Shown here: piece after piece, positions 3,203 to 64,000 of the stretch
Layout: the number at the start of each line of letters is the position of its first letter
Numbering within the stretch: the stretch's first letter is position 1
The notes under the pieces: generated by a model
What the model was told of the DNA's origin: nothing
The model's database searches: none
Seen by the model: the letters and a program-made list of their open reading frames with translations, nothing else
Translations under genes and position numbers: made by a program
Assembly: GCF_030028105.1 (NCBI RefSeq)
Contig: NC_092374.1
Span: forward strand, 8,608,998-8,672,997
Direction: 5' to 3'
DNA length: 64,000 nucleotides
Source: Mobula birostris
Taxonomy: Eukaryota

Positions 3203-3595
3203 CTCCCGGCGAGAGTGTCTCTGTGATGAATGGAACCGAGGGAGCTTCGGCCACGTTACCCTGTGTGTTCACACGGCCTCCGCAGAGCCTCACTGCACAC
3301 ACGGTGACGTGGATGAGGAAGGATCCCTACCGACACATCGTCACATTCAGGCGTTATGAAAATGGATCGTGGGCAGCGGAAAACGGAGTGACTCGGTACG
3401 AGCTCGTCGGGGACCCAGAGCGGGGAAACGCTTCGACCAGGATAAGGCAGCTGAGGGTGGGGGACAGTCACAGCTACCTGTGTCTGGCTGATTTCAGCGA
3501 CTTTACCCACCCTTACCCACACTTCTACGGACACCAGCTCGATCCCCCATATATCCATCTGCCCCAGAGTGAGATCCGGCTGCGGGTCAGACCAG
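3203..3595 (+). CDS. Ig V-set domain exon (V2) of SIGLEC15-like receptor, plus-strand paralog
   Basis: Acceptor ccttccctcAG ends at 3202 and donor GTAAGA starts at 3596. The exon is 393 nt, phase 1-1 and open. It has the V-set framework LPCVF...VTW...GNAS.RI..L...D...YLC...IRLRV. About 79% aa identity to 48474-48869 by manual alignment. Confidence 0.9.
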
Positions 3596-6109
3596 GTAAG
3601 AAATCATTGACACATTCTGCAGGATACGGGGAGGAAGCTGGAGGGAAGGGAGGAAGGGGAACAGGGATGGAAGACGCACCTAACGACGTTGAGGCGGCTG
3701 TAGCCTCGCCTCTGAGAGGCCAGCTTCTGCAGAGTAGGAATCTGGGCTGTCAGGTGGAGAGCGGGGGAGGGGGGCAGATGAAAGAGGAAGCGGGTTTAGA
3801 GAAGTGTTCAGTGAAACACGGAGAGGGCAAGAGAACCGGCTGGAATATCGCAGACCAAAAATACAACACTCTGTCGTTTTGTTTAATAATGGAGTAAATA
3901 ACCCTAACGAGAATTCGATAAGGGACTGTCCAATGTTCATCTGGGGTAACACGGAGAAACTTAGTAAAGCGGCGGGTTCTTGGTAAACCAGAGAGACAAC
4001 GAGTTGTCATTTTTCCCAAGTAAGGGAGAGTTTAACTAGAGTAAAGATATTATACAACAATCTTATAACTATTACATAATTACATATAATTAAAAGTTCC
4101 CGAGAATGTTTCCTGGAATACAACAGTTAACGTATGAAGACCGTTTGATGGATTTGGGACTGTAGAACATAGAAAATCTACAGCACATTACAGGCCCTTC
4201 GGCCCACAATATTGTGCCTACCATGTAACCTACTGCCTATAATTTCCCTACCGCATAGCCCTCTATTTTTCTAAGCTGCATGTATCTAAGAGTCTCTTAA
4301 AAGACCCTACTGTATCCGCCTCTACCACCTTCGCTGGCAGTTCATTCCACGCACCCACCACTCTCTGTGCTAAAATCCTACCTCTGACGTTCCCCTTGTA
4401 CCTACTTCCAAGCACTTTAAAACTGTGACCCCTCGTGTTACCCATTTCAGCCCTGGGAAAAGAGCCTCTGGCTATCCACATGATCTATGCCTCTCATCAT
4501 CTTATACAGCTCTATCAGGTCACCTCTCGTCCTCCGACACTCCAAGGAGAAAAGGCCAAGTTCACTCAACCTATTCTCATAAGGTATCCTCTCCAATCCA
4601 GGCACCATCCTTGTAATTCTCCTCGACATTCTCTCTGTAGTATCCACATCTTTCCTGTAATGAGGTGACCAGAACTGAACACGGTACTCCAAATGGGGTC
4701 TAAGTAAGGTCTTATATAGCTGTAACATTACCTCACGTCTCTTGAACTCAATCCCACTGTTGATAAAGTCCAACACACTGTATGCCTTCTTAACAACACT
4801 GTCAACCTGCGCAGCAGCTTTGAGTGTTCTATGGACATGGTCCCCAAGATCCCACTGATCCTCCGCACTGCCAAGAGTCTTACCATTAATATTATATTCT
4901 GTCTTCAAATTTGACCTACCGAAATGAACCACTTCACAGACGGTTAAACTCCGTCTGTCTCTTCTCAGCCCAGTTCTGCATCCTATCGATGTCCCGCTGT
5001 AACCTTTGACAACCCCCCAGAGTATCCACAACACCACCAACCTTTGTGCCATCAGCAAACTTACTAACCCACCCTTCTATTTCTTCATCCAGGTCATTGA
5101 TAGAGAGCACAAAGAGGAGGTGTCCCAGAGCAGATCCATGCAGAACACCACTGGTCACCATCCTCCATGCCAAATACGAGCCATGCACAACCACTCTTTG
5201 TTTTCTGTGGTAAAGCCAATTCTGGATACACGAAGCAAGATCTCCTTGGATGCCATGCCTCATTACTTTCTGAATGAGACTTGAATGGGGAAACTTATCA
5301 AGTGTCTTACTGAAATCCAAATACACTACGTCCACTGCTCTACTTTCATCAATGTGTTTTGTTACATCTTTAAAAAATTTAATCAGGTTTTCAAGGGCAG
5401 GGTCTGCCCTTGACAAAATTATGTTGACTATCCCTAATCAGTTTATTTCTGTCCAAATGCTCATAAATCCTTCCTCTTAGGATCTTCTCCAACAACTTGC
5501 TCACCACTGAAGTAAGACTTACTGGGCTATAATTTCCTGGATTATCTTTACTCCCTTTCTTGATCAAGGGAACAACGTTTGCAACGTTCCAATCCTCTGG
5601 TACTTCTCCAGTCCCTATTGATGATGCAAAGAGAATTGCCAGAGGCTCAGCAATCTCTTCCCTCGCTTCCCACAGTAACCCGGGGTATACCTCGTCCAGT
5701 CCCGGCCACCTATCTAACTTAATACCTTTCAAAAGCTCCAGCACATCCTCTTTCTTAATGTCTATACGCTCAAGCGTTTCAGTCCTCTTTAGGTCATCCC
5801 CATAATTGCCAGGGTCCTTTTCACTGGTGAATACTGAAATAAAGTATTCATTAAGTGCCTCTGCTACATCCTATGGCTCCATGCACATGTTTCTGTTCTC
5901 ACTCCTGATTAGGGCTATTCTCACACGGCTCATCCTCTTGCCCTTCACATGTTCGTAGAATGCCTGGGGTTATTCTTTATCCTGCCCGCCAAGGCCTTTT
6001 CATGGCCATTTCTAGCTCTCCTAATTTCATTCTTGAGTTCCATCCTGCCACCCTTGTAATTTTCTAGAGTTCTAACAGTACCTCGTTTCTTGAATCTTTC
6101 GAAAGCCTT

Positions 6110-12469: not shown

Positions 12470-12569
12470 GGACAGACGCTTTTGCCGTGCTGATGTTGTG
12501 TATCCCACTCGGATTGAAAACTCTCGCCCTTTTAGTGATGGGCGCCGTTCTCTGCTGTGACAAACTCAG
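12470..12569 (+). CDS. Transmembrane exon of plus-strand SIGLEC15-like receptor (central Lys)
   Basis: Acceptor ttcacttcAG ends at 12469. Phase-1 frame reads GTDAFAVLMLCIPLGLKTLALLVMGAVLCCDKL. Donor CAG|GTACCG follows 12569; read-through would give RYRAQ* with TAA at 12583-12585. 95 of 100 nt identical to 47496-47595. Confidence 0.85.
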
Positions 12570-14182: not shown

Positions 14183-14408
14183 TATATTGTGTGTCACTGC
14201 AAAGCTTCCAATTCATTGTGTATCTGTGCTCATCTCCAATGTTGTTGTCAAACATTGATACCAACGATGATATTTATCCTGCGGAAAATCCCGTTCAAGT
14301 CTCGATCTAAATCCCTTCAAAGGCTGTAAGTGAATGGGGAGGCCGGATTAGGTCTTGTTGTACAACTGCCAGGGAGGTTCATGTTAACTGGTCTTGTTCT
14401 GTCCACAG

Positions 14409-14529
14409 AAAGGGAGGAGACTCATGCACCGCAGGAGGCAGAGAAGACCAGACTTCCAAGAACCAGGAACAGACGCCCCGCCCTCCTCGCTCCATCAGCT
14501 TACCGCACTCTGGGTGCGGGCATTTCTGA
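14409..14529 (+). CDS. Candidate cytoplasmic-tail exon of the plus-strand receptor (speculative)
   Basis: Branch-like gttaac, pyrimidine tract and CAG ending at 14408. The phase-2 frame joins the TM donor to give RKGGDSCTAGGREDQTSKNQEQTPRPPRSISLPHSGCGHF*. No clear homolog in the minus gene. Confidence 0.25.
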
Positions 14530-15669: not shown

Positions 15670-17288
15670 ATACTCTGTAAAGTCCAGAACCTTGAGGAAA
15701 ATTAAAGTGGATAAATCCCCGGGACCTGACAGAGTGTTCCCTCGGACCTTGAAGGAGACTAGTGTTGAAATTGCAGGGGCCCTGGCAGAAATATTTAAAA
15801 TGTCGCTGTCTACAGGTGACGTGCCAGAAGATTGGAGAGTGGCTCATGTTGGTCCGTTGTTTAAAAAGGGATCAAAAATTAATCCGGGAAATTATAGGCC
15901 GGTAAATTTAACGTCAGTAGTATGTAAGTTATTGGAGGGAGTACTAAGAGACAGAATCTACAAACATTTGGATAGACATGGACTTATTAGGGAGAGTCAA
16001 CATGGCTTTGAGTGTGGTAGGTCATGTTCGACCAATCTATTGGAGTTTTTCGAGGAGGTTACCAGGAAAGTGGATGAAGGGAAGGCAGTGGATATTGTCT
16101 ACATGGACTTCAGTAAGGCCTTTGACAAAGTCCCTCATGGGAGGTTAGTTAGGAAAATTCAGTCGCTAGATATACATGGAGAGATGGTAAATTGGATTAG
16201 ACATTGGCTCAATGGAAGAAGCCAAAGAGTGGTAGTAGAGAATTGCTTCTCTGAGTGGGGCCTATGACTAGTGGTGTGCCACAGGGATCAGTGCTGGGTC
16301 CATTGTTATTTGTCATCTATATCAAGGATCTGGATGATAATGTGGCAAATTGGATCAGCAAATTTGCTGATGATAGAAAGATTGGAGGTGTAGTAGACAG
16401 TGAGGAAGGTTTTCAGAGCCTGCAAAGGGACTTGGACCAGCTGGAAGAATGGGCTGACAAATGGCAGATGGAGTTTAATACAGACAAGTGTGAGGTATTG
16501 CACTTTGGAAGGACAAACCAACGTAGAACATACAGGGTTATTGGTGAGACACCGAGGACTGCAGTAGAGCAGAGGGATCTGGGAATACAGATACAAAATT
16601 CCCTAAAAGTGGCGTCACAGGTAGATAGGTTCGTAAAGAGAGTTTTCGGTACATTGGCCTTTATTAATCACAGTATTGAGTATAAGAGCTGGAATGTTAT
16701 GATGAGGTTGTATAAGGCATTGGTGAGGCCGAATCTGGAATATTGTGTTCAGTTTTGGCCACCAAATTACAGGAAGGATATAAATAAGGTTGAAAGAGTG
16801 CAGAGAAGGTTTACAAGGATGTTGCCAGGACTTGAGAAACTCAGTTACAGAAAATGGTTGAATAGGTTAGGACTTTATTCCCTGGAGCGTAGAAGAATGA
16901 GGGGAGATTTGATAGAGGGATATAAAATTATGATGGGTATAGATAGAGTGAATGCAAGCAGGCTTTTTCCACTGAGGCAAGGGGAGAAAAAAAACCAGAG
17001 GACATGGGTTAAGGGTGAGGGGGGAAAAGTTTAAAAGGAACATTGGGGGGGGCTTCTTCACACAGAGTGTGGTGGGAGTATGGAATGAGCTGCCAGACGA
17101 GGTGGTAAATGCGGGTTCTTTTTAACATTTAAGAATAAATTGGACAGATACATGGATGGGAGGCGTATGGAGGGATATGGTCCGTGTTCAGGTCAGTGGG
17201 ACTAGGCAGAAAATGGTTCGGCACAGCCAAGAAGGGCCAAAAGGCCTGTTTCTGTGCTGTTGTTTTTCTATGGTTTTCTATGATTTCT
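15670..17288 (+). mobile_element. 5'-truncated CR1 LINE ORF2 (RT), frameshifted
   Basis: ORFs 15692-16267 and 16255-17034 with RT motifs. Tail ttttctatggttttctatgatttcta. Confidence 0.92.
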
Positions 17289-17845: not shown

Positions 17846-19585
17846 TGTCACAATGGGGTGCTGGGAACGGACCCAAATGCGAGACAGACACTGAAGTACA
17901 AGGAACAGGACTTGACTGGAGTAGGGACATGACAGGATACAGTCAAGGAGCAGGGACAAGAACGCAGAGTTGGGCTAGGGAAAGCGGGACCAGGACTAGG
18001 AACCATGGACTAGGAGACAAGGCTTGGACTCCAAGCCCGAGACTGGACAAGGACTCAGAACCTGGGTCTTGCCTCGGGCTCGGGCCCCAGAACCAAGCAA
18101 GGACATGAGATGGCTTCAGGACAGGACGTGGCTGGGGTCTAGAGGCGTGTGCTTGGAGACAGGCTGTGGTCTTTGCTCTTGAGGCTGGGATCTTGGGTCC
18201 GGAGCTTGGCTGCGGGATCCTCGAGGCTTGGGTTCTCGGAGCTTGGCTGCGGGATCCTCGAGGCTTGGGTTCTCGGAGCTTGGCTGCGGGATCCTCGAGG
18301 CTTGGGTTCTCGGAGCTTGGCTGCGGGATCCTCGAGGCTTGGGTTCTCGGAGCTTGGCTGCGGGATCCTCGAGGCTTGGGTTCTCGGAGCTTGGCTGCGG
18401 GATCCTCGAGGCTTGGGTTCTCGGAGCTTGGCTGCGGGATCCTCGAGGCTTGGGTTCTCGGAGCTTGGCTGCGGGATCCTCGAGGCTTGGGTTCTCGGAG
18501 CTTGGCTGCGGGATCCTCGAGGCTTGGGTTCTCGGAGCTTGGCTGCGGGATCCTCGAGGCTTGGGTTCTCGGAGCTTGGCTGCGGGATCCTCGAGGCTTG
18601 GGTTCTCGGAGCTTGGCTGCGGGATCCTCGAGGCTTGGGTTCTCGGAGCTTGGCTGCGGGATCCTCGAGGCTTGGGTTCTCGGAGCTTGGCTGCGGGATC
18701 CTCGAGGCTTGGGTTCTCGGAGCTTGGCTGCGGGATCTTCGTCTTGAAATGCAGAGGCTGATGCTGAGAGACAGACTGGGAACTGAACAAGATAGAGCTG
18801 GGACTTGTCCTTCGAAAAGCCGGGACTCATCGTTAATACGACACCAACATGAGACAGGACAGTACATAGACATAGAGCGGGGACTTATACTTAGACAAGC
18901 AGGGACTCAACCTCTCCACACCAAGGTGGGACAGGTCCACCTGTTGGGTAACGGCAGAACGGTCGGACTTACCCAACAGAGGCAAAGACAAGACATGACC
19001 CCCACATGGCAACGGTAAAACGGCCTGACTTACTCCACGGAGCGAGGACAAGACAAGACAAGACAGGACAGATCCCCCCCGCAGGCCAAATGCAAAACGG
19101 CCTGACTTACCCCACGGAAGCGAGGACAAGAAGAGACAAACACCAAAGAATAACAGACAGTTCCATCTCTGCTTTGGGGTAGCTCCGAGTCTCAGTTCGG
19201 CCAGCAACTTCAGCAGGCTATGAAAACAGCTGGATCCCAACCTAGCTCGGAGTAGCTGGCAGTCACTCAGCTGGCCCAGTAAACAGCCGAATCCATACTG
19301 CAAAGACAGCTCCGACTGCCAACAGCAAGGCTCCATGAAGTGATGGCTCTCCAACACGGCCTGAAGATGACAAGTGGCCGCTGTAGCCTTCCACCGGCAG
19401 GTTGCTCCCAGGGCAACTGAAAAGACAAACAAGCAGCCCACACTCAACCTCAAGGCTACTTATATTCCAAGCTCCAAGATGGGAATCAGGTGCCTGTGCT
19501 TAACTCAATCAAACGAGGGACAGCTGGAAGACCCGGAGTCCGGATCCTGAACTGAAATGCAGACTTGACGGACCAGACCATGACA
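17846..19585 (+). mobile_element. Solo-LTR-like element with 37-bp array, 5-bp TSD
   Basis: Starts TGTCA and ends TGACA. Flanks are ctctt (17841-17845) and ctatt (19586-19590). Removing it restores the L1 reading frame. Confidence 0.78.
18201..18737. repeat. Perfect 37-bp minisatellite, 14.5 copies
   Basis: Unit ggagcttggctgcgggatcctcgaggcttgggttctc: 14 full copies (18201-18718) plus 19 nt. Confidence 0.97.
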
Positions 19586-27775: not shown

Positions 27776-29139
27776 GGCCTACATCTGTTAACTGGGCTCA
27801 GGATGGTGGGTGGGTGGGAGAGGAGGGTCTGTCCTTGAGAGGGATTCAGGGAGGTGAAGTTGAAAGTATGTAGGGTGGAGGAGGTTTTGGAATAGAGTAA
27901 GGTTTCAGGCGAAGCTCACGGGAAAGATCCGAACCAATTCTAGTGACCCTTGCGGGTTGTCCCCAGAATATCCTTAAATGCTGGTTGTTTATGCAAATGG
28001 TTCATTTCACATGAAATAAATACATAAATGTATTTGGATCTGATTTAATGAGATCGTGGATAACTTGTGTATGTGCTTCCAGATTCCACCAAAGTTCAAA
28101 GGAAACTTATCATCAAAGTGCATAGATGTCACCATCTCCTGCCCTGAGATTCATTCTCATTCAGGCATTCACCTAGAACAAAGAAATACAACGGATTCAA
28201 TGAAAAACTGTATGCAAAGACTGAGAAGTAGCCAACGTGTAAAAGACGACAAAATGCAAAAAAAGAAGAGACGGTTTGCACCTGACCTGGAAATGGACAA
28301 TAGTGCTGCTCGGGGTTGTGGGGGGTGGGGGTGAGTTGGGGGGGGGCAGGTGCGGGTTTAAACTAGAGTTGCAGGAGTATGGAAACTTGAGTGGCAGTTT
28401 GTAGAGAGGTTGTGGAGACGATGTTGCTGGGGCCTCAGTCAAATTCGGGAATCAAAAGGTTGAACGCGGTGCGACTGATGTCCTGAGCTGCGTATACTTC
28501 AGTGCAAGTAAAGGGAAGGCAGATGGGCTCAGGGCATGGATCAACAGCTTGAATTATGATGTTGCAACCATTCGTGAACCTTAGTTGCAGGAGGGGCAGG
28601 ACTAGCAGTTCAATATCAGACGTGACAGAGCGGAAGGGATTAAAGGAGAAGGGATGGCGTTACTAGTCAAGGGAAACTAGTCACGGCAGTGTTCAGTCAG
28701 GACGTACTGGAGCCTTTTGAAGTGAGGTGCTATGGGTGGAACTGAGTAACAAGAATTGTATGACCACGTTACTGGGGCTATATTACAGACCGCCCAACAG
28801 TCCGTGTCATGGTCCCGTCTGGTAATGTCCCATCTTATGCAATATCCACTTCATCCCCTTTATCTGCCCTGCTTGTAATCCCCTCGAAGAATTCCAACCG
28901 TTGCATCAGACAATATGTTCCCTTAATGAAACTATTCGACTTTGTCTTATCTTGTCGTGTTATCAAGTACTCCATAACCTCATCCTTAGCAATTATCTCC
29001 AACATCTTCCTAACCACTGAGGTCAGGCTAAGGCCAGTCTCAGTTAGTCTCAGAACTTAAAGGAACAACAGGAAAGTGTGTCTGAGTCCCGTCAGTGCAT
29101 TCTGATGTAAACCGGACTTGCACTTCTCCTTAAACTGCA

Positions 29140-40610: not shown

Positions 40611-42601
40611 AAATTAGCTAAACTTGTTAATTTAAATTTATACCTTCTGATTAAACATTCCTTACAAACTTGGATCCGGTTCCTAAATTTTGTTTAATCT
40701 TAAACAATTTAAATTTTGTAGTTTAATTTATCGAAATTACTTTTTTAAGCCCTCTTTGAGTGATCGAAATTTTTTTACTTTGGAAAAATAGAGGTATTAA
40801 TTATTTTCTGGATTTATTTAAAGAAGATAGACTGATGTCTTTTGAACAATCAGTTGATAAATATTCTCTTTCATACTCACACTTTTTAGAATACCTTCAA
40901 GTTAGACATTTCTTACAAAAATATTTGGGTAATTTTCCTTACATTTTGGATGCCGACCTGTTAGATACTATTACGAGTATGAACCTTCTGATGAAGGGTT
41001 CCATTGGAAGAATTTAAAATTTACTATTACAATGGGATAAGCGTCCTTTATTTAAGATTAAACAAGAATGGGAAAAGGAACTTAATTTCACTTTTATGTC
41101 GAAGGACTGGATGCGGATTCTGAAGTTGGTTAACTCTTCTATGATCTGTGCTAGTCATTCACTGGTTCAATTTAAAATTGTACATCGTTACTCTTTGACA
41201 AAGGAGAGACTGTCTAAAATGTTACCTAATGTTGATAGTTATTGCGATAGATGTAAAACTGAGACAGCTACACTGACACACATGTTTTGGTCTTGTTCTA
41301 TACTGGAACAGTTCTGAAAGTCAGTTTCTTCTACAGTTTCTAAAGCACTTAAAATTAATTTACAACCTAACAAATCAACTGTGCTTTTTGGAATAATTCC
41401 TCAAAATATCCACGGTATTTCTTTGTCTGACCAACATGTTATTGCATTTGTTACATCGATAGCTAGGAGGGCCATTTTTTTGAAGTAGAAGGATATATCA
41501 GCTCCCATTTTGTCACAATGGTTCTCTCAAGTGATGCTATGTCTTAGTTTGGAGAAAATTAGAAGTCGAGCGTTTGAACCTATGTTTGATTTTGAGAAAA
41601 GGTGGGGTTCATTTGCTCTTTACTTTTATTTGAGTTGATTGATAGATTTCCTCCACGATCTAATTGTAAATTTTTGGTACTTTTTTTTGCTGACGGTTTG
41701 ACGTTTATCTTTAGAAACTTTTTGTATGATGCATGGCTCCGGGGTTGAACACCTAATAGGGTTTTTTCTCACTTTTCCTTGCTTAGTAGGATTTTTTTTT
41801 CTCTTTTTTTGTCACCAAAATGTTTTCAATCTTTAAAATAATGTTTTTTTTCTTGAGACATTGTAAGTGCTGCCTACTTCGATGTACGCTTGTTAATTTT
41901 ATGTAATAATAATAAAAAGTTTTGAACAGAAGAGGAAATTATGAAGGAACACAACAGGTCAAATAGCATCCTTGGAAATAAATCAACAGTCAACGGTTCC
42001 CGCCGAGACCTTTCATCATGTCGAGACTGATGAAGGGTCTCGGTCCAAAATGTTAACTGTTTATTTTTTTTTCCATTATGTGCTCCCTGCAGATCTCCTC
42101 CGGCATATTCTTTCTGAATGTTGCTCTGGATTTCCACCATGTGGAGAAACTCTTCTGTTTATGATTTGTCATTCGGAAATTGTCTCCTTCTTGAGTATAT
42201 TTAGCGACTGGGCTTCCGCTACCTTATCAGTCGGAGACAGCTCTGTAAGTTCATCACGCTCGGGAGTGGAGAAATTTCGCTTATCAAGATGTGGTACCAC
42301 GTATTCCCGAGTCTTTGGCCATAGGTCCTGGACTTCACAGCTGGTGTGAGTAAGCCACTGTGAAGAATGAATCAACTATTGTCATTCCGCACCAACAGTG
42401 AGAGCAGGATCCTTGAGTTCTTCACTCACACTTCAATGTTTTGAACTTCTCACCCGCCGCTGACTCTGAAATGCTGACTTATTTCAGTTCCTGTAGAACT
42501 TGAGGAACTGTTCAACCACAACACTGACACTTATGACTCAAAGGAATCAGGAGGCAGAACAGAGAGCAAATTTATTCTTAAAACTGATCGGAACATCAGC
42601 C

Positions 42602-42734
42602 NNNNNNNNNNNNNNNNNNNNNNNNNNNNNNNNNNNNNNNNNNNNNNNNNNNNNNNNNNNNNNNNNNNNNNNNNNNNNNNNNNNNNNNNNNNNNNNNNNN
42701 NNNNNNNNNNNNNNNNNNNNNNNNNNNNNNNNNN
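42602..42734. other. Assembly gap (133 N)
   Basis: Run of N. Confidence 0.99.
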
Positions 42735-45328
42735 TTAAGATATATAACCAAGCACTTGGACTTAAATCCTCCAAGATATGCTCTGAACCCAATGGCGGTT
42801 GCCGTCCATGCAGCGATAAACGTCGCCTGATGAGGCCAGCAAGCCGTGATCCCGATCCCACGTATTCAAGACATTTCGGCACGTTTAGCCTAGAATTCAT
42901 TCACAGCTTGTCGTGTCAAAGGAGTGGGGGGTATTTATTTCGTAAATGGAACCCACTTAAATTTTCATTTGTTGGTCGCATCCATATAGTCAAAATGATG
43001 ATTGTACGAAAAATGTTATATTTATTTCAGAATATCACTGTTTTTCTGACTAAGAAGTTTTTTGACCGGATTGATTCTATTTGTTTTATCTTTTGTGTGG
43101 AATAATAAAAGACCAAGATTTGGTAAATGTCACTTACAAATGTTGAAAAAGGATGGAGGTCTCGCTTTGCCTGATTTAAGAATGTATTACTCGGCCGTTA
43201 ATGCGCGATACACGTCCTTTTGGTTACACTGGGTTGATAAGAACGCTTGGGCAATTTGGGTAGATTTGGAATTAAAAGCTGTGAAACAGTTTTACTTAAC
43301 CTCGTTATTGGGAGCTGCTTTACCTATACAATTAGCTAAAGTTGTTAATTTAAATTTATACCCTGTGATTAAACATTCTTTACAAACGTAGATCCAGTTC
43401 CGCAATTTTGTTTAATCTTAAAGAATTTAAACTGTGTAGTTTAATTTATTGAAATTACTTTCTTAAGCCTTCTTTGAGTCATACATTTTTTTTGCTTTGG
43501 CAAATTAAAGGTATTAATTATTTTCTGGATTTATTTAAAGAAGATAGGCTGATGTCTTTTGAACAATTAGTTGATAAGTATCCTTTTTCACACTCACACT
43601 TTTTAGAATACCTTCAAGTTAGACATTTCTTTCAAAAATATTTAAGTAATTTTCCTTATATATTGGATGCCGACCTGTTAGATAATATTACGAGTATGAA
43701 CCTGTTGATTAAGGGTTCTATAGGAAGAATTTATAATTTACTATTACAATGGGATAAGTGTCCTTTATTTAAGATTAAACAAGATTGGGAAAAGGAACTT
43801 ATTTTGGCTTTTATGACGGAGGACTGGACGTGGATTCTGAAGTTAGTTAACTCTTCGTTGATGTGTGCTAGTCATTCACTGGTTCAATTTAAAATTGTAC
43901 ATCGTTACTCTTTGACGAAGAAGAGATTGTCTAAAATGTTTCCTAATGTTGATAGTTATTGCGATAGATGTAAAACTGAGCCAGCTACACTGACACACAT
44001 GTTTTTGTCCTGTTATATACTGGAACAGTTCTGGAAGTCAGTTCCTTCTACAATTTCTACAGCATTTAAAATTAATTTACAATCTAACAAATTAACTGCG
44101 CTCTTTGCAATAATTCCTCAAAATATCCACGGTATCTCTTTGTCTGACCAACATGTTATTGCATTTGTTCCATGGATAGCTAGGAGGGCCATTTTTTTGA
44201 AGTAGAAGGATACATCAGCTTCCACTTTGTCACAATGGTTCTCTCAAGTAATGCTATGTCTTAGTTTGGAGAAAATTAGAAGTCGAGCGTTTGAACCTAT
44301 GTTTGATTTTGAGAAAAGGTGGGGTTCATTTGCTCTTTACTTTTATTTGAGTTGATTGATAGATTTCCTCCACGATCTAATTGTAAATTTTTGGTACTTT
44401 TTTTTTGCTGACGGTTTGATGTTTATCTTTAGAAGCTTTTTGTATGATGAATGGCTCCGGGGTTGAATACCCAATAGGGTTTTTTCTCACTCTTCCTTGC
44501 TTAGTAGGATTTTTTTCTCTTTTTTTGACACCTAAATGTTTTCAATCTTTAAAACAATGTTTTGTTTTCTTGAGACATTGTAAGTATTGCCTACTTTGAT
44601 GTACACTTATTAATTTTGGATAATAATAATAATAAAAAGATTTGAAAAGAAGAGGAAATTATGAAGGAACGCAACAGGTCAAGTAGTATCCATGGAAAGA
44701 AATGACAGTCAACGTTTCTGGCTGAGACCTTTCATCATGTCGAGACTGATGAAGGGTCTCGGTCCAAAATGGTAACTGTTTATTTTTTTCCATCATGTGC
44801 TCCCTGATCTGACGAACTCCTCCGGCATATTCTTTCTGAATGTTACTCTGGATTTCCACCATGTAGAGAAACTCTTCTGTTTATGATTTGTCATTCAGAA
44901 ATTGTCTCCTTCTTGAGTATATTTAGCGACCGGGCCTCCTTTACATTTTGAGCCGGAGACAGCTCTGTAATTTCATCACACTTGGAGGTGGAGACATTTC
45001 TGCTTATCAAGATGTGGTACCACGTATTCCCGAGTGTTTGGCCATAGGTCCTGGACTTCACAGCTGGTGTGAGTAAGCCACTGTGAAGAATGAATCAACT
45101 ATTGTCATCCCGCACCAACACTGAGAGCAGGATCCTTGAGTTCTTCACTCACACTTCAATGTTTTGAACTTCTCACCCGCCGCTGACTCTGAAATGCTGA
45201 CTTATTTCAGTTCCTGTAGAATTTGAGGAACTGTTCAACCACAACACTGACACTTATGACTCAAAGGAATCAGGAGGCAGAACAGAGAGCAAAGTTATTC
45301 TTAAAACTTATCGGAACATCAGCCCCCC

Positions 45329-45506
45329 NNNNNNNNNNNNNNNNNNNNNNNNNNNNNNNNNNNNNNNNNNNNNNNNNNNNNNNNNNNNNNNNNNNNNNNN
45401 NNNNNNNNNNNNNNNNNNNNNNNNNNNNNNNNNNNNNNNNNNNNNNNNNNNNNNNNNNNNNNNNNNNNNNNNNNNNNNNNNNNNNNNNNNNNNNNNNNNN
45501 NNNNNN
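45329..45506. other. Assembly gap (178 N)
   Basis: Run of N. Confidence 0.99.
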
Positions 45507-45905
45507 ATATAGCCAAGCACTTGGACCTCACTCCAAGTTACGCTCGAAAGCCAATGGCAGTTGCCGTCCATGCAGAGATAACCGTCGCCTGATGAGGCCA
45601 CCAGCCGTGATTCCAAACCCACGTATTCAAGACATCTCGGCACGTTTAGCGGAGAATTCAACCACAGCTTCTAGTGTCAAAGGAGTGGGGGGTTAATGAA
45701 GGTCAGGTAACATTTCTTCGCGTGGAACATAGCGTTCTCATTAGGTTCCTTCCTCCAGCTGGTTGTTGCGTATGCGCAGAGCAAGAACGACAATGGTGTA
45801 GTGTGATTAAACATTTTACTGAGTTATGGTAGCCAGGGTACACTCTGGGTAACTTACAGAGTCGCAGAGACCAACCGGGATTGCCAAGACGACACGCATG
45901 CGCAT
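45507..45905 (-). other. Exon-like cassette (speculative): short ATG exon 45858-45905, 187-nt intron, exon from 45670 into the gap
   Basis: Donor TCT|GTAAGT. Acceptor cattaac-cccccactcctttgacacTAG. The joined frame is open: MRMRVVLAIPVGLCDS-KLWLNSPLNVPRCLEYVGLESRLVASSGDGYLCMDGNCHWLSSVTWSEVQVLGY. The other two copies of the second piece have stops or frameshifts. Confidence 0.22.
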
Positions 45906-47210: not shown

Positions 47211-47495
47211 CCTAACCCATCCCTCCTGCATATCCTTACATTTGTCTATCATTCAGTGGGTGTTTAGCAGAGACATTCAATCTGAAAGCTATCTCAAAAT
47301 GCTAAATAGCTGACAAACGTGGACTATTTTCTGCGTAGCTCCGACAAACAGCAATCTGATAATGAGTTGTTTGTCGACAATACCGACTGGGACGCCTTAA
47401 TGTTTGAGTCAGTTTCCAACTCCCACCGACCGTCTCAGTGAATCTGATTTCAGTCACGTCACGGCAAAAGCCTTCTGCATTATTTCATACAGTAC

Positions 47496-47595
47496 CTGAG
47501 TAAGTCACAGCAGAGAACGGCGCCCATCACTAACAGGGCGAGAGTTTTCAATCCGAGTGGGATACACAACATCAACTCGGCAAAAGCGTCTGTCC
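47496..47595 (-). CDS. Transmembrane exon of minus-strand SIGLEC15-like receptor (central Lys)
   Basis: Acceptor ttcacttcAG at 47597-47596. Reads GTDAFAELMLCIPLGLKTLALLVMGAVLCCDLL. Donor CAG|GTACTG; read-through gives RYCMK* with TAA at 47482-47480. Confidence 0.87.
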
Positions 47596-48473
47596 CTGAA
47601 GTGAAAGTGAGAGAGGTCAATCCAGACTCGGAAAAGGGGGAGAGACCAATAATGTAGACTGATTGAAATGGGTAGATATGGGGATGAACATATAATTTAG
47701 TAGATTTATACCGATGGCACTGCGGAAGATAACTTTTGTGTGATGGAATAAGACAAGGATATTACTAAGAATGTAGAGATCAGGAAAACGTCAGAACAAA
47801 AAATAATTAACCTGCAGTAAGACCATAGATCAGAAGACATAGGAGCCGAACTAGGCCATTCGACCAATCGAGTCAGCTCCGCTATTCCATCATGGCCGAT
47901 TAGTTATCCCTCTCAACCCCATTCTACTGCAATCTCCCCGTAAAATTTGACGCCCTTAATAATCAAGAGCCTACAAACCTCCGCTTGAAGACCAAAGACC
48001 TGATCTCCACAGTTACCTGTGGCAATGAATTCCACATATTCGCTACCCTCTGGCTAAAGAAATTCATTCTCCTCGCTGTTCTAAAGGGACGTCCCTGCAT
48101 TCTGGGGCTGTGCCTTATGGATCCAGATTCCACCCCCCCCCCCCACCCACCATGAATCTTCTCCACATCCCCTCTATCTACGCCATTCGACATTCGATAG
48201 GGTTCAAGGAGATGGCTCTGGCTTTTTATAAACTCCATCGAATACAGTCCCAGAACCATCAAACGCTCCTCATACGTCAACCTTTTCATTCCTTTCTCTA
48301 AACCCGCTATCCCTCTGACTGCCCCCTATCCCCCGCTCTCCGTGCGACATCCGAGATTCAAAGGCGGGGCTGCAGCCGCCTGAATGTCGTTAGATGCGTC
48401 TTCCTATTTCTGCTCCCCTTCCTGTATCTAATCTTCTCCCCGTACCCTACAGAATGTGGCAATGTTTTCTTAC

Positions 48474-48869
48474 CAGGTCTGACCCGCAGCCTGATCTCAC
48501 TCTGGGACACATGGATATATGGGGGATTGAGATAGTGTCCGTAGAAGAAGTGTGGATAACGGTAGTCCGAGTCCCTGAACTCAGCCAGACACAGGTAACC
48601 GTGAGCGTCCTCAACAGCAGGCTGCTTTATCCTGGTCGAGGCGTTTCCCAGTTCTGGGTTCCCGACGAGCTCGTACCGAGTCACTCCGTTTTCCGCTGCC
48701 CACGATCCATGTCCTCGGTGCCTGAATGTGACGATGTGTCGGTAGGGATCCTTCCTCATCCACGTCACCGTGTGCGCGGTGAGGTTCTGCGGAGGCCCTG
48801 TGAACACATACGGTAACGTGGCTGAAGCTCCCTCAGTTCCAGTCATCACAGAGACACTGTCGCCGGGAG
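48474..48869 (-). CDS. Ig V-set exon V2 of minus-strand receptor (B-strand Cys replaced by Tyr)
   Basis: Acceptor ccttccctcAG at 48871-48870 and donor GTAAGA at 48473. The exon is 396 nt, phase 1-1 and open. Confidence 0.92.
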
Positions 48870-50119
48870 CTGAGGGAAGGACAGGCGATCTTCTGTCAGT
48901 TATATGTATATATCTATACATATTTAATCACACCTCCACCCATTAACCCATCCCAACCCCACCATCCCTCACTACAACGACATCCACGTCAGCCACTCCT
49001 CTCCACTGCCCCTCAGCATCCTTTATCACCCCATGCGCCGCTGACACATCCACTCCTCATTGAACCACTGACCATTCACTGTCCTCCTGAATTTTCATTT
49101 GCCCTGCTTCGACCTAGAGGAGTTCCTCCTGCCTAGAGTTGTTTTGTCACTATGATGTCCTGTCAGAATCACCTTATGTTCAAATACTCCTGCTCCTACC
49201 ATCACTTTCTGGAGTCTATGTACATAGGCTAATCCTTTCTACGTACATTTGTATATACGGCCACACTTAAATAGTCACTTGTGCATTGTGTTTTATATTT
49301 ATTATGCGTGTGTTTTGGTTGTTTTTTAATTGTGTTCGTTATGCTTATTGTGTTTTTTTATAAGAACATAGGAGCAGAATTGGGCCATTTGCCCGTCGCG
49401 TCCGCTCCGCCATTCCATCATGGCCGATTCATTTTCCTTCTCTGCTCCAATCTCATGCCTTTTCCCCGCATTCCTTCATGCCCTGACCAATCAATAATCT
49501 ATCAATCGAATATACCCAATGACGTGGCCTCCACAGTCGTCTGTGGCAATGAATTCCACAGATTCACCATTTTCAGGCTAAAGAACTTCCTTCTCATCCC
49601 CGTTCTAAAAAAACGCCCCTTTATTCTGACTGTGTGTCCTCCGATCTTAGACTCCCCCATTAAAGCAGATATCCACACTATCAAGCCCTTTCACTATTCA
49701 ATAGGATTAAATTAGACCACATCTCCTTCTTCTGAATTCCAATGAGTAGGGGCCCAGAGACATAAAATGGTCCCTGTATGACATCTTTCGTCCCAGAATA
49801 AGTTTCGTGAACCTCCTTTGAACCCTCCCCACTGTCAGAACATCTTTTCTTTGTAAGGGGCCCAAAACTGCTCATAATACTCGAGGTGAGACATTGACAG
49901 TGCTTTATAAAGTCTCAACATTACATTCTTGCTTTTATATTCCCGTCCTCTCGAAATGTATGCGAACATTGCATTTGCCTTCCTCACCACCGACTCAACC
50001 TGTAAATTCACTTTTAGGGAATCCTGCACGACGGCTTCCAAGCCCTATTCACCTCGGAATTTTTTTTAAATTTTTCCCTCTATTTAGAAGTTCTCCGACA
50101 CTTTTATTACTTCTAATAA

Positions 50120-50895
50120 ACGGGCAGACTGTTATTTAAATGGGGAAAGAATTCAAAGTTCTGAGATGCAACGGGACTTGTGAGTCCTCGTACAGGATAC
50201 CCTTAAGTTTAACCTTCAGGTTGAGTCGGTGATGAAGAAGGCGAATGCAATGTTGGCATTCATTTCTAGAGGGAATAGAGTATAGGAGCAGGGATGTGAT
50301 GTTGAGGCTCTATAAGGCACTGGTGAGACCTGATTTGGAGTCCTGTGGGCAGTTTTGGTCTCCTTATTTAAGAAAGGATGTGCTGACGTTGGAGAGGGTT
50401 CAGAGAAGATTCACTAGAATGATTCCGGGAATGAGGGTTGACATATGAGGAACGTTTGTCCGCTCTTGGACTGTATTCCTTGGAGTTTAGAAGAATGAGG
50501 GGAGACCTTATAGAAACATTTCGAATGTTGAAAGGCATGGACAGAGTGGATGTGCAAAGTTGCTTCCCATGATGGGGGAGTCTAGTACGAGAGGGCATAA
50601 CTTAAGGATTGAAGGGCGCCCATTCAGAACAGAGATGTGAAGAAATTTTTTTAGTCAGAGGGTGGTGAATCTATGGAATTTGTTGCCACGGGCAGCAATG
50701 GAGGCCAAGTCTTTGGATGTATTTAAAGCAGAGATTGATAGGTCTCTGAGTAGCCAGGGTATCAAAGGTTATGGTGAGAAGGCGGGGTAGTGGGACTAAA
50801 TGGGAGAGAATGGATCAGCTTATGATAAAATGGCGGAGCAGACGCGATGGGCCGAATAGCCGACTTCTGCTCCTTTGTCTTATGATCTTATGGTC
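50120..50895 (+). mobile_element. Young CR1 3' end in the V1-V2 intron
   Basis: YRSRDVMLRLYKALVRPDLE...RVQRRFTRMIPG, with a tcttatg-type tail. An older minus-strand CR1 fragment lies at about 49360-50060. Confidence 0.87.
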
Positions 50896-51548
50896 TAAGT
50901 ATTTGCCTTCTCTGTTCCCCTGGACTGTCGACTTTCATAATTCCGCTGCTTCGTTTTCTGGAGGCGGGGAAGGGATTGAAGATTTTCTGGGCACCGGGTA
51001 CATACAGGAGAGTTCCTGGATTTCCCTCGGAGTGACAGAGAGTTTACAGCTGGGAAGGAAGACATTCGGTCACTTGACAAACTCCCTGACTCTTCATTCT
51101 GTCTCTATTCTCAGAGTTTAAATACTATCAGATTATTCACCAAATCCCATGCCTCCGGCTTTTGCTGCTCTTAATAAAAGAAGCCAATATTGTCCAACTT
51201 CTGTTCGCAACCACTTTCCAATCTATTAAACCCCTTCTGAATACTCTCCAACGCTTCCATACCCTTCCTCTAATGTAGCTCCTAGATCAGCACAGAAATC
51301 TCCTAATGTCGGTTCTCCAAAGTTTTATAAAGCTGCAACACTTTTATCTCAAACTGCCCGACCAAATATACCAGAGCCAGCGTTTCATGCAGGTCCCCAA
51401 GCACACTGCCCAACAGGATTTACCGGAGAGGGATCCGGATCAGGGTCCCCGACACTTCACTCCCACATTTATTGATCAGGTTTGGACCATAGGGATCCTG
51501 TGGTCCTTGCGCTCTGAGGCAGCTACAGTACCTGAATTTGGTCCTCAC

Positions 51549-51935
51549 CTCTCACAGAGAGCTCCGTTAGAACCACTGTTCGAAATTTATTAGTATTGAG
51601 CTCCACCTGGCACCAATACCGACCACCGTCACTCCGGTTCAGACGCTGCACCATTATCGAAATGTCTCTTTGAATGAAGTTCTCCACGAATCCGAACCGC
51701 CCTCCTCCAGTCTCCTGTGTCGTTATTTCGCACCGGGAGCGGCCGGGACTGGGAAATGTGCAATTAAGCACCAGCTTTTTAGCACCTGATTCCACCCTGT
51801 ACCAGATCACGGAACCGAAAAGGGCGACGTCAGTGGGTGGGTGGGTGAAAGTCCACGGTAACACAGCTGAGGCCCCTTCCACCGCAGAGACCACATCAGC
51901 GCCGGACATTGACCAACCACGGATCGAATTGTCTG
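51549..51935 (-). CDS. Ig V-set exon V1, SIGLEC15-like N-terminal domain (B-strand Cys replaced by Trp)
   Basis: Acceptor (ct)nCAG|CAG with both AGs in phase 1, and donor G|GTGAGG at 51548. Reads WSMSGADVVSAVEGASAVLPWTFTHP...GSVIWYR...NCTFPSPGRSRC...GRF...DISIMVQRLNRSDGGRYWCQVE...TELSV, which matches my recollection of SIGLEC15 V-set motifs (WSM, LPCTFTHP, extra Cys pair, YFCRVE). Confidence 0.92.
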
Positions 51936-51964
51936 CTGAGAGAGAGAGACGGGCGGAGAGATCG

Positions 51965-51965
51965 A

Positions 51966-52022
<57 letters not shown>
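51965..52022. repeat. Compound (GT)n(GA)n microsatellite just upstream of the V1 acceptor
   Basis: Read directly from the sequence. It is (CT)n(CA)n on the gene's sense strand. Confidence 0.95.
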
Positions 52023-52199
52023 GGTGGGGGAGGGAGAAGGAAAGATCAACAGCGGAGCAGCTGGTGAACAGACAGAGTTTCAGAAAAAAAAACTGAACCG
52101 GATCCTGGTCTGTAGCGGCACGGGATATGGTAACGTATCGGTGAGCCTGGATTTTATATCGACACAGCCAAGTGGGTTACTGACGTGCGGCGGGTCCGG

Positions 52200-52560
52200 G
52201 GAATGGGTACATGTACTATAATGGATACCCGGGTGGGTGTTACAGCTTGTGGTCACACCCTTTTGGGGTCTGGGATGGGGTTTATATATGTAATAACAGA
52301 TACGCGGGGTTACAGGCTGAGGTCGGACGTGGGAGGGAGCGGGACGTGATTATTAGTATAATAACGGATACATGAGAACGGCATAGAGGCTTGGGTCTGA
52401 CGTGGGAGGGATCCGCGGTGAAGGGCATATGTAGTATAATGGATACCCAGGAGTGGGTTACCGGCGGGGGTCTGAAGTGGCAAAGGTGTGGGGGTGAGGG
52501 TTGTGTGTATAATAACGGATGCCCGGGAATCGGTTACAGGCTGGGATCCAGTGATGGTTT
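52200..52560. repeat. Degenerate minisatellite of about 70-80 bp, about 5 copies, in intron 1
   Basis: Recurring core tata(at/ataac)ggatacc...gttacag(g)ct...g(gg)tc. Confidence 0.5.
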
Positions 52561-53435
52561 CAGGGGTCTGTCATTGTCTGTTCCCCGGATCTGTTGGATT
52601 TATAATCCTCCTGCATCAGAGGGAAAGTAGTTGGAGATTCTGGGTATTGGTTGCAAACAGGAGAGTTCTTGGAATTACCTCAGAGTGAAAGAAAGGTTAC
52701 AGCTGGGTACGATAACATTCAACCTATTAAACTCATACTGGCCCGGTGTAAGAACCACCCACGCAGTCCGACTCGCCAATCCTCTCTCCACCGCCCCGCG
52801 AATTCATTTCAGACACTTGTAGCTCTCTCCTTTTCAACGCCGCCTTCCTACCTGGCCCCACGTTTCATTTCGAACACTACTGGGGTGGAAATAATGTGGC
52901 CAGGCAACTCTACAGCTCTTCGTCGAATCACTTTCATTCTGTAACGACATTTTTTCCCCGTCCACCAATGGGAACAGCCTCCCTCAGTCCACACTCTTCA
53001 TAATTTTAACTCTCCAACCCCGTCCCCCCAAAAGCAGGTCTCCATCGGGTATGTGGGTTAGAAGCAGGAGGCCTCGGCACCTCTAGATCTCACCACCATT
53101 GAAGCTGATCTACGTTAAACTCAACTCCCGATCCTCTCCCGCCGCCTAAATCCATCCACCCTCCCATGTGCCGAGGGTTCCACTCTGGGTTACAAAGTCC
53201 TGGGATCCAGATGTGTGTTCCTCCAGCTGTCAGGTCACCAGATCACCTCTACCAGAGGGAGTGTAGTGTGCGAAGGAGGAGGATCAGTCAGGAGCGCTTA
53301 GGGTTGGAAAGTCTCCCAATATCCCCTCACTCCCTGAGTGTAATCCAAGGCCCAGACAGCTGTAGAGCTGCCACAGCGGAAACCCGAATATTCGGATGAG
53401 GCAAGGAGATAATGAGGATAATGAAAAACACTTAC

Positions 53436-53496
53436 TGTATCCCTGGACTGAGATGGATAGCAGGATCGTGCAGAGGCAAACCCGGAGGGAACGCAT
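53436..53496 (-). CDS. Signal-peptide exon of minus-strand receptor
   Basis: ATG at 53496, MRSLRVCLCTILLSISVQGY, then A|GTAAGT (consensus donor). Phase 1, compatible with the V1 acceptor. Confidence 0.85.
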
Positions 53497-54166
53497 CGCC
53501 AACGCGTTAGTCTGACATCCTTTGTGCATCCTAAAACTGAAATGCAGAAGTCGTGTCAAGTATTGGTCATTTCGTCAAAGATCCACCACCCTTATAAACG
53601 GGTTATAATTCGACAAATCACTGATTTCTAACTGAACAGGGTTGGTATGTTGCAAGAGCAGCACCTTGTGGGCATCACGCATACGCATTCAGTCGTGACC
53701 ATCTGAAAACGGAAGAAGCCCCTGAGCAGTGCGGAGAGTTCGGATGCGTTCCCAAAACTGAACTTGAGAGGGCAAAGGGTAGCAATAAAGTTTCAACAGC
53801 AGACATGATTAAGGAGGTTCCTAAAACATTTCAAAATTCATTTACTCTCCTTAACCAAAACGTGTGTACCTTTGGGATGCCCGGGGTGAATTCCAATTAT
53901 TTATTCAGACTTGCTCAAAAATTCTGAATTCCCACAAGCCATTTTAAGTGAGGGCAGCTCTGACAAAATGTTCTGCTTCTCCCCGGGTTTGAAGGGTTTA
54001 TGGATGGAGGTAATCAGTGTTAAAAGCTGGCTGAAGCAGTCACGGTGGTCGATTTACCGTTGTGTGATATCAATGGCTGCCATCCCAACCTATTGTCCCC
54101 TCAAATATCTCCAAATTAATTCCCATATTGAGCAAAATATAAAGGATGGGTAAAAATTGAACAGTA

Positions 54167-62330: not shown

Positions 62331-64000
62331 ATAGTATCAATTCCAAAGAAGAAACATACAAATTAGCCAGAACAAGTGGCTCACCTGAGGACTAGGAGAA
62401 ATTCAGAGTCCAGCAGAGGAGGGCAAAGGGCTTAATTAGAAAGGGGAAAAAAGATTGAGAGAAAACTGGCAGGGAACATAAAAACTGACTGTAAAAGCTT
62501 TTATAGATATGTGAAAAGAAAAAGATTGGTTAAGACAAATGTAGGTCCCTTACAGACAGAAACAGGTGAATTGATTATGGGGAACAAGGACATGGCAGAC
62601 CAATTGCATAACGACTTTGGTTCTGTCTTCACTAAGGAGGACATAAATAATCTACCGGAAATAGTAGGGGACAGAGGGTCTAGTGAGATAGAGGAACTGA
62701 GGGAAATACATGTTAGTAGGGAAGTGGTGCTAGGTAAATTGAAGGGATTAAAGGAAGATAAATCCCCAAGGCCAGATGGTCTGCATCCCAGAGTGCTTAA
62801 GGAAGAAGCCCAAGATGTTGGACTAGTTCCTGAGGATTGGAAGGTGGCTAATGTAACCTCTCTTTTTAAAAAAGGAGGAGAGAGAAACCAGGGAATTATA
62901 GACCGGTTAGCCTAACATTGGTGGTGGGGAAAATGCCAGAGTCAGTTATCAAAGATGTGATAACAGCACATTTGGAAAGCGGTGAAATCATCGGACAAAG
63001 TCAGCATGGATTTGTGAAAGGAAAATCATGTCTGACGAATCTCATAGAATTTTTTGAGGATGTAACTAGTAGAGTGGATAGGGGAGAACCAGTGGATGTG
63101 GTATATTTGGATTTTCAAAAGGCTTTTGACAAGATCCCACACAGGAGATTAGTGTGCAAACTTAAAGCACACGGTATTGGGGGTAAGGTATTGATGTGGG
63201 TAGCGAATTGGTTGGCAGACAGGAAGCAAAGAGTGGGAATAAACGGGACCTTTTCAGAATGGCAGGCAGAGACTAGTGGGGTACCGCAAGGCTCAGTGCT
63301 GGGACCCCAGTTGTTTACAATATATATTAAGACTTAGACGAGGGAATTAAATGCAGCATCTCCATGTTTGCGGATGACACGAAGCTAGACGGCAGTGTTA
63401 GCTGTGAGGAGGATGCTAAGAGGATTCAGGGTGACTTGGATAAGTCAGGTGAGTGGGCAAATTCATGGCAGATGCAATTTAATGTGGATAAATGTGAGGT
63501 TATCCACTTTGGTGGCAAAAACAGGAAAACAGATTATTATCTGAATGGTGGCCGATTAGGAAAAGGGGAGGTGCAACGAGACCTGGGTGTCATTATACAC
63601 CAGTCATTGAAAGTGGGCATGCAGGTACAGCAGGCAGTGAAAAAGGCGAATGGTGTGCTGGCATTCATAGCAAGAGGATTCGAGTACAGGAGCAGGGAGG
63701 TACTACTGCAGTTGTACAAGGCCTTGGTGAGACCACACCTGGAATATTGTGTGCAGTTTTGGTCCCTTAATCTGAGGAAAGACATTCTTGCCATAATGGG
63801 AGTACAAAGAAGGTTCACCAGATTGATTCCTGGGATGGCAGGACTTTCATATGAGGAAAGACTGGATCGACTAGGCTTATACGTGTTGGAATTTAGAAGA
63901 TTGAGTTTGAATCTTATTGAAACATATAAAATCCTAAAGGGATTGGACAGGCTAGATGCAGGAAGATTGTTCCTGATGTTGGGGAAGTCCAGAACGAGGG
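62330..64000 (+). mobile_element. CR1 LINE ORF2 (RT), running off the window
   Basis: QHGFVKGKSCLTNLIEFFE...YLDFQKAFDKIPH...GVPQGSVLGPQLF. Confidence 0.92.

Follow-up and report, generated by a model that had tools for sequence, protein, structure and literature searches.

A candidate activating receptor gene of a SIGLEC15-derived elasmobranch family in the giant manta ray Mobula birostris

Introduction

A stretch of 64,000 nucleotides from the genome of the giant manta ray Mobula birostris (contig NC_092374.1 of RefSeq assembly GCF_030028105.1, positions 8,608,998 to 8,672,997 of the forward strand), called the window in the following, contains on its minus strand a set of exons which join to a membrane protein with two tandem immunoglobulin V-set domains, resembling in parts the receptor SIGLEC15. 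The question raised by this locus is whether it is the gene of a working receptor, and of which kind and descent such a receptor would be. Mammalian SIGLEC15 is a conserved single gene with roles in bone resorption and in tumour immune suppression. The manta locus is a genuine, already annotated protein-coding gene. Judged from its sequence and from that of its relatives, it would with a probability of roughly two in three (0.68) encode a working, probably non-lectin activating receptor which signals via a DAP12-like adaptor and belongs to a SIGLEC15-derived paired-receptor family.

Gene structure and public annotation

Four minus-strand exons with GT-AG splice sites, matching phases and a frame of 319 codons with the last exon read through had been described in a first-pass annotation of the window, and direct reading together with scripted joining of the exons reproduced this description exactly. 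Exon 1 (53436..53496, 61 nt) carries the ATG start codon and the signal peptide MRSLRVCLCTILLSISVQGY, ends in phase 1 and is adjoined by GTAAGT. Exon 2 (51549..51935, 387 nt, acceptor ctctcag, donor GTGAGG) encodes the first, SIGLEC15-like V-set domain and exon 3 (48474..48869, 396 nt, acceptor ccctcag, donor GTAAGA) the second V-set domain. Exon 4 (47496..47595, 100 nt, acceptor cacttcag, donor GTAC after 47496) contributes the stalk and the transmembrane helix. When the minus strand is read directly, all introns run from GT to AG with a pyrimidine tract before each AG, and all internal junctions are in phase 1, the customary phase of exons in immunoglobulin superfamily genes. Read through its donor, exon 4 ends with TAA at 47482-47480 and measures 116 nt, the product then ending in ...RYCMK, and the four exons joined by script amount to 960 nt with no internal stop and 319 amino acids. 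Intron 3 has a length of 878 bp, and neither intron 2 nor intron 3 contains a run of N or an assembly gap. The product is laid out as a type I membrane protein, in which a signal peptide is followed by two V-set domains and by a membrane helix that carries a lysine at its centre.

A search with the domain 2 exon found the gene at 100% identity as P0161, an "uncharacterized protein [Mobula birostris]" of 326 amino acids. The joined model and P0161 agree in all 315 of the 315 residues they share, and because of this identity the reading frame is not a chance product. The gene is thus not hidden among repeats, as had been claimed for it at first, since it had already been annotated publicly. P0161 begins at an upstream in-frame ATG at 53529, which adds the 11 residues MHKGCQTNALA; the ATG at 53496 is the likelier start because paralogs begin with M-x-SLRVCLC at this ATG. 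At the other end P0161 uses the 100-nt form of exon 4 and closes with ...CCDLLR, for which it requires a fifth coding exon on the minus strand at 28169..28172, with the acceptor ttctag at 28173/28172, where a G completes the arginine codon AGG and TGA follows. The annotated gene span of 25,361 bp puts the last coding base exactly at 28169. From exon 4 this exon is 19.3 kb away downstream, in the region between the two tail-to-tail genes; the annotation may have chosen the splice which leads to it on weak support, the read-through to 47480 being the alternative end.

Two further features of the locus were observed. Exon 2 has a tandem acceptor, cag/cag (NAGNAG), at 51933-51938 of the minus strand, whose second AG would keep the frame and remove one residue after the signal peptide, and a (CT)n/(CA)n microsatellite is located in intron 1 at 51965-52030 (minus strand), about 30 nt upstream of this acceptor.

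The V domains and the membrane segment

The Pfam V-set profile matches exons 2 and 3 above its curated cut-off, with E values of 7e-10 and 2e-6, respectively. Among solved structures the V domain of human SIGLEC15 (7zoz) is the best match of both domains (E 9e-11 for domain 1 and 1.7e-7 for domain 2), and domain 1 scores 63.5 bits against a mammalian SIGLEC15 V domain. Domain 1 shares with SIGLEC15 the WSM motif, a B strand reading LP-x-TFTHP and the pair of C'-C'' cysteines (LNC...RC). The C95-C104 disulfide formed by this pair in the human protein has been described as unique to SIGLEC15 in the paper on the crystal structure (PMC10264397). The two cysteines are present in 78 and 76, respectively, of 79 domain 1 sequences of the family described below. 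They are absent from domain 2 of the manta protein, which has a long F-G insert and a single cysteine; the cysteine of the F strand is retained in both domains.

The membrane segment, LMLCIPLGLKTLALLVMGAVLCC, contains the motif GLKTL in the context LCIPLGLKTL, with the lysine in the middle of the helix; its codon AAA is found at 47546..47548 of the minus strand, in agreement with the first-pass annotation. That the membrane lysine of SIGLEC15 pairs with an aspartate of DAP12, a further element of the first-pass annotation, is documented in the literature for K274 of the human protein and D50 of the adaptor (PMC6941304).

The predicted structure of the product, with a mean predicted local distance difference test score of 81, consists of two beta sandwiches and a transmembrane helix at residues 296-325, in a prediction which may not register the loss of a disulfide. 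A fold search with the whole model returned generic tandem-V matches (JAML, single-chain variable fragments, CD33, Siglec-10) and was no finer than the evidence from sequence. A C2 exon was sought by tblastn with the C2 domain of P0034, the V-V-C2 protein treated below; none was found within the window, and P0161 is without a C2 domain as well. The architecture is hence V-V-transmembrane with a membrane lysine, as proposed from the outset, rather than the V plus C2 of SIGLEC15, both domains being V-set and C2 sequence being absent from the window. An affinity to pIgR, CD300 or TREM was also considered and rejected; the pIgR score was the sum of five weak domain matches, each with an E value above 10.

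The elasmobranch V-V family

Domain 1 was used for an exhaustive search without a profile, which yielded 35 cluster representatives at E <= 1e-10, and word-indexed searches listed about 100 named relatives. These occur in skates (Leucoraja, Amblyraja, Rhinoraja), in rays (Mobula, Hypanus, Hemitrygon, Pristis, Narcine), and in sharks (Heterodontus, Chiloscyllium, Hemiscyllium, Rhincodon, Stegostoma, Heptranchias, Pristiophorus). Their automatic names vary from SIGLEC15, SIGLEC12 and sialoadhesin-like to JAML and uncharacterized. Most have the V-V layout, some a single V domain and some three or four. Skates, rays and sharks all have relatives which combine this layout with the membrane motif CIPLGLK. 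With family proteins of Mobula, Hypanus and Hemitrygon the manta protein shares 70-77% identity.

The family members are of two types. A transmembrane lysine in a segment of the CIPLGLK type, followed by a tail of few residues, was found in 33 of 98 sampled members, and an uncharged membrane segment with a long tail carrying an immunoreceptor tyrosine-based inhibitory motif (ITIM), for example VxYAxV, in 29 of the 98. Within M. birostris the activating-type P0165 and the inhibitory-type P0176 have ectodomains which are 88% identical. Such near-identical ectodomains on forms with presumptive activating and inhibitory ends are the signature of a paired-receptor family. A lineage-specific activating family had been proposed for this locus; the lineage-specific V-V family was confirmed by these searches, but its members are paired and not only activating. 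By these sequence criteria the manta gene belongs to a SIGLEC15-derived paired-receptor multigene family which extends across elasmobranchs. No paper on an elasmobranch SIGLEC15-like family was found in the searchable literature.

Relation to SIGLEC15

A maximum-likelihood tree was calculated from 63 V domains. The first domains of the family form one clade (support 98/96) and the second domains another (100/98), with the two manta domains inside their respective clades, and the V domains of bony-vertebrate SIGLEC15 form a clade of their own (92/87) apart from both. The deep nodes of the tree are weak (62/15) and its branches long.

Besides the family, elasmobranchs possess a separate V-V-C2 gene with a transmembrane lysine, represented in Mobula hypostoma by P0034/P0233 and named SIGLEC15 by NCBI. 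Rays, skates and sharks have clear orthologs of it, placed on the chromosome-sized records which also carry the family. It resembles the manta protein in having one V domain of each of the two types and a very similar membrane segment (LCLIPLIKFLLLLITG versus LCIPLGLKTLALLVMG). It differs in that it retains the C2 domain, looks single-copy, has very long branches in the V domain tree, and is better conserved, with 87% identity between Mobula and Hypanus compared with 75-79% for the family. In three of these proteins (P0034, P0239, P0246) neither V domain has an arginine at the position of human R143, and the cysteine pair corresponding to C95-C104 is missing too, both in distinction to most of the family. 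This keeper of the SIGLEC15 architecture is therefore, as far as its residues can tell, probably not a canonical sialic-acid lectin either. In its similarity to the mammalian SIGLEC15 V domain the first domain of the family equals or surpasses V1 of P0034.

In the tree, V2 of P0034 is sister to the second domains of the family (97/88), and its V1 joins the first domains weakly. Because of this placement the V-V-C2 gene and the family would have separated after the duplication of the V domain, and the family would then have lost the C2 exon. The family and the V-V-C2 lineage appear best called co-orthologs of SIGLEC15. The earlier statement that the manta gene is not a SIGLEC15 ortholog accordingly stands as far as a plain ortholog is meant, in view of the separate clades and the separate V-V-C2 gene, but it has to be amended to co-orthology.

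Residues lost in the manta copy

Three positions at which the V domains of the family are mostly conserved are altered in the manta protein. Where domain 1 would have its canonical B-strand cysteine (C64 in human SIGLEC15), the codon is TGG for tryptophan (51853..51855, minus strand). This residue is cysteine in 72 of 79 family sequences and tryptophan in three, all of them from Mobula (P0161, P0165, P0167). The corresponding cysteine of domain 2 is replaced by tyrosine (TAT, 48808..48810, minus strand), a residue found at this position in P0161 and P0225 only, cysteine being present in 89 of 91 family sequences; the plus-strand paralog in the window has TGT. The canonical disulfide between the two sheets (C64-C142 in the human protein) can thus be formed in neither domain. 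The third position is that of R143, whose role in the binding of sialic acid has been described (PMC10264397). Here domain 1 has the glutamine codon CAG (51607..51609, minus strand), reading RYWCQVEL in place of RYFCRVEF, and domain 2 has leucine; an arginine is present in 58 of 79 domain 1 sequences of the family. The changes to tryptophan, tyrosine and glutamine are each explained by a single base. Since the tryptophan and the tyrosine each occur alone in other intact genes, these changes are tolerated within the family. The loss of the arginine predicts that canonical sialylated glycans would not be bound by the manta protein.

The inverted paralog in the window

The left part of the window contains a second member of the family on the plus strand, an inverted, tail-to-tail copy which matches P0172 ("SIGLEC12 isoform X2", M. 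birostris) and has P0160 as its M. hypostoma ortholog. Its signal and domain 1 exons lie to the left of the window. The domain 2 exon (3203..3595) matches P0172, has the B-strand cysteine intact and is 79% identical in amino acids to domain 2 of the minus-strand gene; the transmembrane exon with the lysine (12470..12569) is 94% identical to exon 4. A terminal cytoplasmic exon (14395..14526) matches P0172 and is 89% identical to the tail of P0160. The inverted homology between the two copies stops at about 14324 on the side of the paralog and at 45980 on the side of the minus-strand gene, some 70 nt short of the tail exon. An inverted arm beginning inside the right end of the window was looked for and none was found. 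Between the two copies the exons are 87% (domain 2) and 95% (transmembrane exon) identical and the introns 68-76%; the ratio of nonsynonymous to synonymous substitutions (dN/dS) amounts to 0.63 in domain 2 and to 0.47 in the transmembrane exon.

Expression

Evidence from RNA was taken from Logan contigs, for which public runs were searched by exon words and the contigs aligned to the window. One contig of run X1 with an exact match joins exon 3 to exon 4 at 48474/47595. When likeness was lowered to 90%, deeper contigs of several runs were found to begin exactly at the boundary of exon 3. These contigs carry a patch of 9 nt at 48711-48719 which changes HRGHG to RYENG, the version of the paralog, and three other altered bases (48775 and 48785 among them). 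Outside the patch this RYENG version is about 99% identical to the domain 2 exon of the manta gene, and its depth is above that of the exact-match contigs. The patch looks like a gene conversion, and the version carrying it stems either from an allele or from a neighbouring gene copy of nearly the same sequence. Repeat copies in introns 2 and 3 (49.3-50.9 kb and 47.7-48.3 kb) draw contig depths in the thousands. For the exon junctions, for which RNA had been proposed as a check, the outcome for this exact copy is thin and ambiguous: the exon 3-exon 4 joint is present in one contig, but this contig fits the RYENG variant as well and the V exons are nearly uncovered.

A working receptor or a decaying one

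Several of the observations weigh against a working activating receptor and speak for a different explanation, that this member of the family is becoming or has recently become a pseudogene, its frame still open with no selection on it as a receptor. Both canonical B-F disulfides are gone, a combination seen in no other sampled member of the family, and the lectin arginine of domain 1 has been replaced by glutamine, a single base sufficing for each loss. In a DNA alignment of the window the usual terminal exon of the family has no counterpart in this copy, having gone at the edge of the inverted duplication, and the annotated fifth exon, 19 kb away, supplies one base and a stop. The closest annotated protein of M. 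hypostoma is at most 77% identical, compared with 91% for the ortholog pair of the neighbouring paralog, and domain 2 has a dN/dS of 0.63. As to RNA, exon 2 words reach at most 12% in any public run and the exons of domains 1 and 2 are essentially uncovered at a likeness of at least 99%. The exact-match contigs of run X1 are unspliced across intron 3 and past the donor of exon 4, and the spliced contig, with 28 letters on the side of exon 3, is not distinguishable from the RYENG variant.

Against decay stands that the gene has kept its start codon, the four splice sites and 315 codons undamaged at a synonymous divergence of about 0.19 and with introns which differ by 24-32% from those of the nearest paralog. 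In simulations of neutral substitution at the observed divergence, which ignore indels and splice sites, the frame remained open in only 0.7-6% of cases, a figure which thus applies before indels are counted. In the tree, the branches of the two manta domains do not exceed in length those of the paralog lineage, for which a conserved ortholog exists in M. hypostoma. The stronger conservation of exons than of introns between the two copies in the window, with the dN/dS values given above, and the confident predicted structure also speak for a working gene. The change of cysteine to tryptophan is common to the intact P0165 and P0167 and that of cysteine to tyrosine to P0225, and only a short tail is required by activating receptors. 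Taken together, a pseudogene appears unlikely, though it is the one competing explanation which has to be taken seriously.

It is very improbable that the locus produces by means of other 3' ends a secreted or decoy V-V protein which does not signal. Proteins of this shape exist in the family, as P0172, an isoform of the neighbouring paralog which ends right after domain 2, P0173 and P0213 are all without a transmembrane segment, and the exact-match contigs continue from exon 3 into intron 3 with no splice. On the other hand no part of the gene is as well conserved as the transmembrane exon, with 94% identity in amino acids and a dN/dS of 0.47, one contig carries the splice from exon 3 to exon 4, and the unspliced contigs may be pre-mRNA or carry-over of DNA.

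Still less credible is a plain manta SIGLEC15 ortholog with a C2 exon which has been missed or has fallen into an assembly gap, since in spite of the SIGLEC15-like domain 1 and membrane segment the whole window is free of C2-like sequence, introns 2 and 3 contain no N run and the public model has no C2 domain, the V-V-transmembrane layout is common to dozens of relatives, a separate conserved V-V-C2 gene with transmembrane lysine exists in related species, and the family has many copies per genome.

For the activating receptor, which is preferred to these alternatives, the following course of events and mode of action may be proposed. An ancestral SIGLEC15 gene would have lost its C2 exon and then diversified into paired forms, an activating type with a transmembrane lysine and a short tail, and an inhibitory type whose membrane span is uncharged and whose tail bears an ITIM. 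Going by its membrane lysine, the manta protein would pair with the aspartate of a DAP12-like adaptor bearing an ITAM (immunoreceptor tyrosine-based activation motif), in the manner of K274 of human SIGLEC15, and binding of a ligand by the ectodomain could in this way activate a myeloid or natural killer-like cell. If working, this copy is most likely a non-lectin or weakened receptor, and it may serve as activating counterpart to ITIM-bearing relatives whose ectodomains are similar. A survey of 2014 found no FcR gamma in sharks and did not report on DAP12 there (PMC4016189); literature searches for DAP12/TYROBP in sharks returned nothing relevant.

Comparison with known receptor systems

With SIGLEC15 of bony vertebrates (human Q6ZMC9, 7ZOZ) the manta protein has in common the N-terminal V-set domain, which is the best match of both of its own domains, and a short stalk followed by a membrane helix with a central lysine in an LG-x-K-x-L context and a short tail. 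It differs in its second domain, which is V-set where SIGLEC15 has a C2-set domain, in the C64-C142 disulfide, broken by the tryptophan, in the glutamine at the place of the essential R143, and in its membership of a many-copy family with inhibitory partners.

The likeness to the paired families of other vertebrates (CD33-related Siglecs, KIR/LILR, PILR, SIRP, CD300) lies in near-identical ectodomains joined either to a charged membrane segment with a short tail or to an ITIM tail, and in clustered genes, inverted duplicates, rapid evolution and patches resembling gene conversion. The elasmobranch family differs from them in descending from the SIGLEC15 branch, in ectodomains which are V-V or V only, and in that its ligand and adaptor are putative. 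MDIR of skates and NITR of teleosts are likewise multigene immune-type immunoglobulin receptors of fish which occur in charged-membrane and ITIM forms. The domains of MDIR have been described as I-set or C2-set and CD300/pIgR/TREM-like, and NITRs are teleost genes with a J-like motif. The best matches of the manta protein are instead SIGLEC15, and it is set apart from MDIR by description only; the name MDIR stands on no match listed in the word-indexed searches for relatives, and in the literature a passing mention was found.

According to earlier surveys, cartilaginous fish are without the classical FcR and LRC families. It is conceivable, though rather doubtful when taken as a whole, that elasmobranchs have made SIGLEC15 into a paired multigene system of their own, comparable to KIR/LILR and the CD33-related Siglecs and maybe replacing FcR/LRC. 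The manta copy would then be a working activating receptor free of both disulfide and arginine, retargeted to another, perhaps pathogen ligand and counterbalancing inhibitory relatives which read sialic acid.

On its own the single manta gene, being already annotated, adds little. The novelty lies in the uncharacterised family and in the odd residue losses of this copy and not in the existence of the gene. The SIGLEC15 lineage of elasmobranchs comprises dozens of fast-evolving V or V-V genes whose products have a lysine of the DAP12 type or else an ITIM tail, which makes the family a concrete and testable candidate for the role of paired innate receptors in cartilaginous fish, on which little has been published. 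Its natural variants, with the arginine and the core disulfide either kept or lost, could show how a Siglec V domain shifts from a lectin to another kind of binder.

Other features of the window

A tandem repeat at 18192-18741 consists of 14.9 copies of a 37-bp unit with 99% matches and gives rise to spurious open reading frames of 177-295 amino acids in several frames on both strands. Fragments of non-LTR (non-long terminal repeat) retrotransposons are found at 1085-2524, 4447-5744, 15692-17034, 43474-44205, and 62511-63337; matches to the Pfam families RVT_1 and zf-RVT fall on 1583-2524, 16255-17034, and 43474-44205, and the remaining fragments are reverse transcriptase-like by translation of their open reading frames only. 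Two open reading frames at 42500-43105 and 45223-45696 are similar to each other, both beginning with MRNCSTTTLTLMTQRNQEAEQRA and running into stretches of N at 42602-42734 and 45329-45506, respectively; they are two copies of one repeat, each broken by masked or gap sequence.

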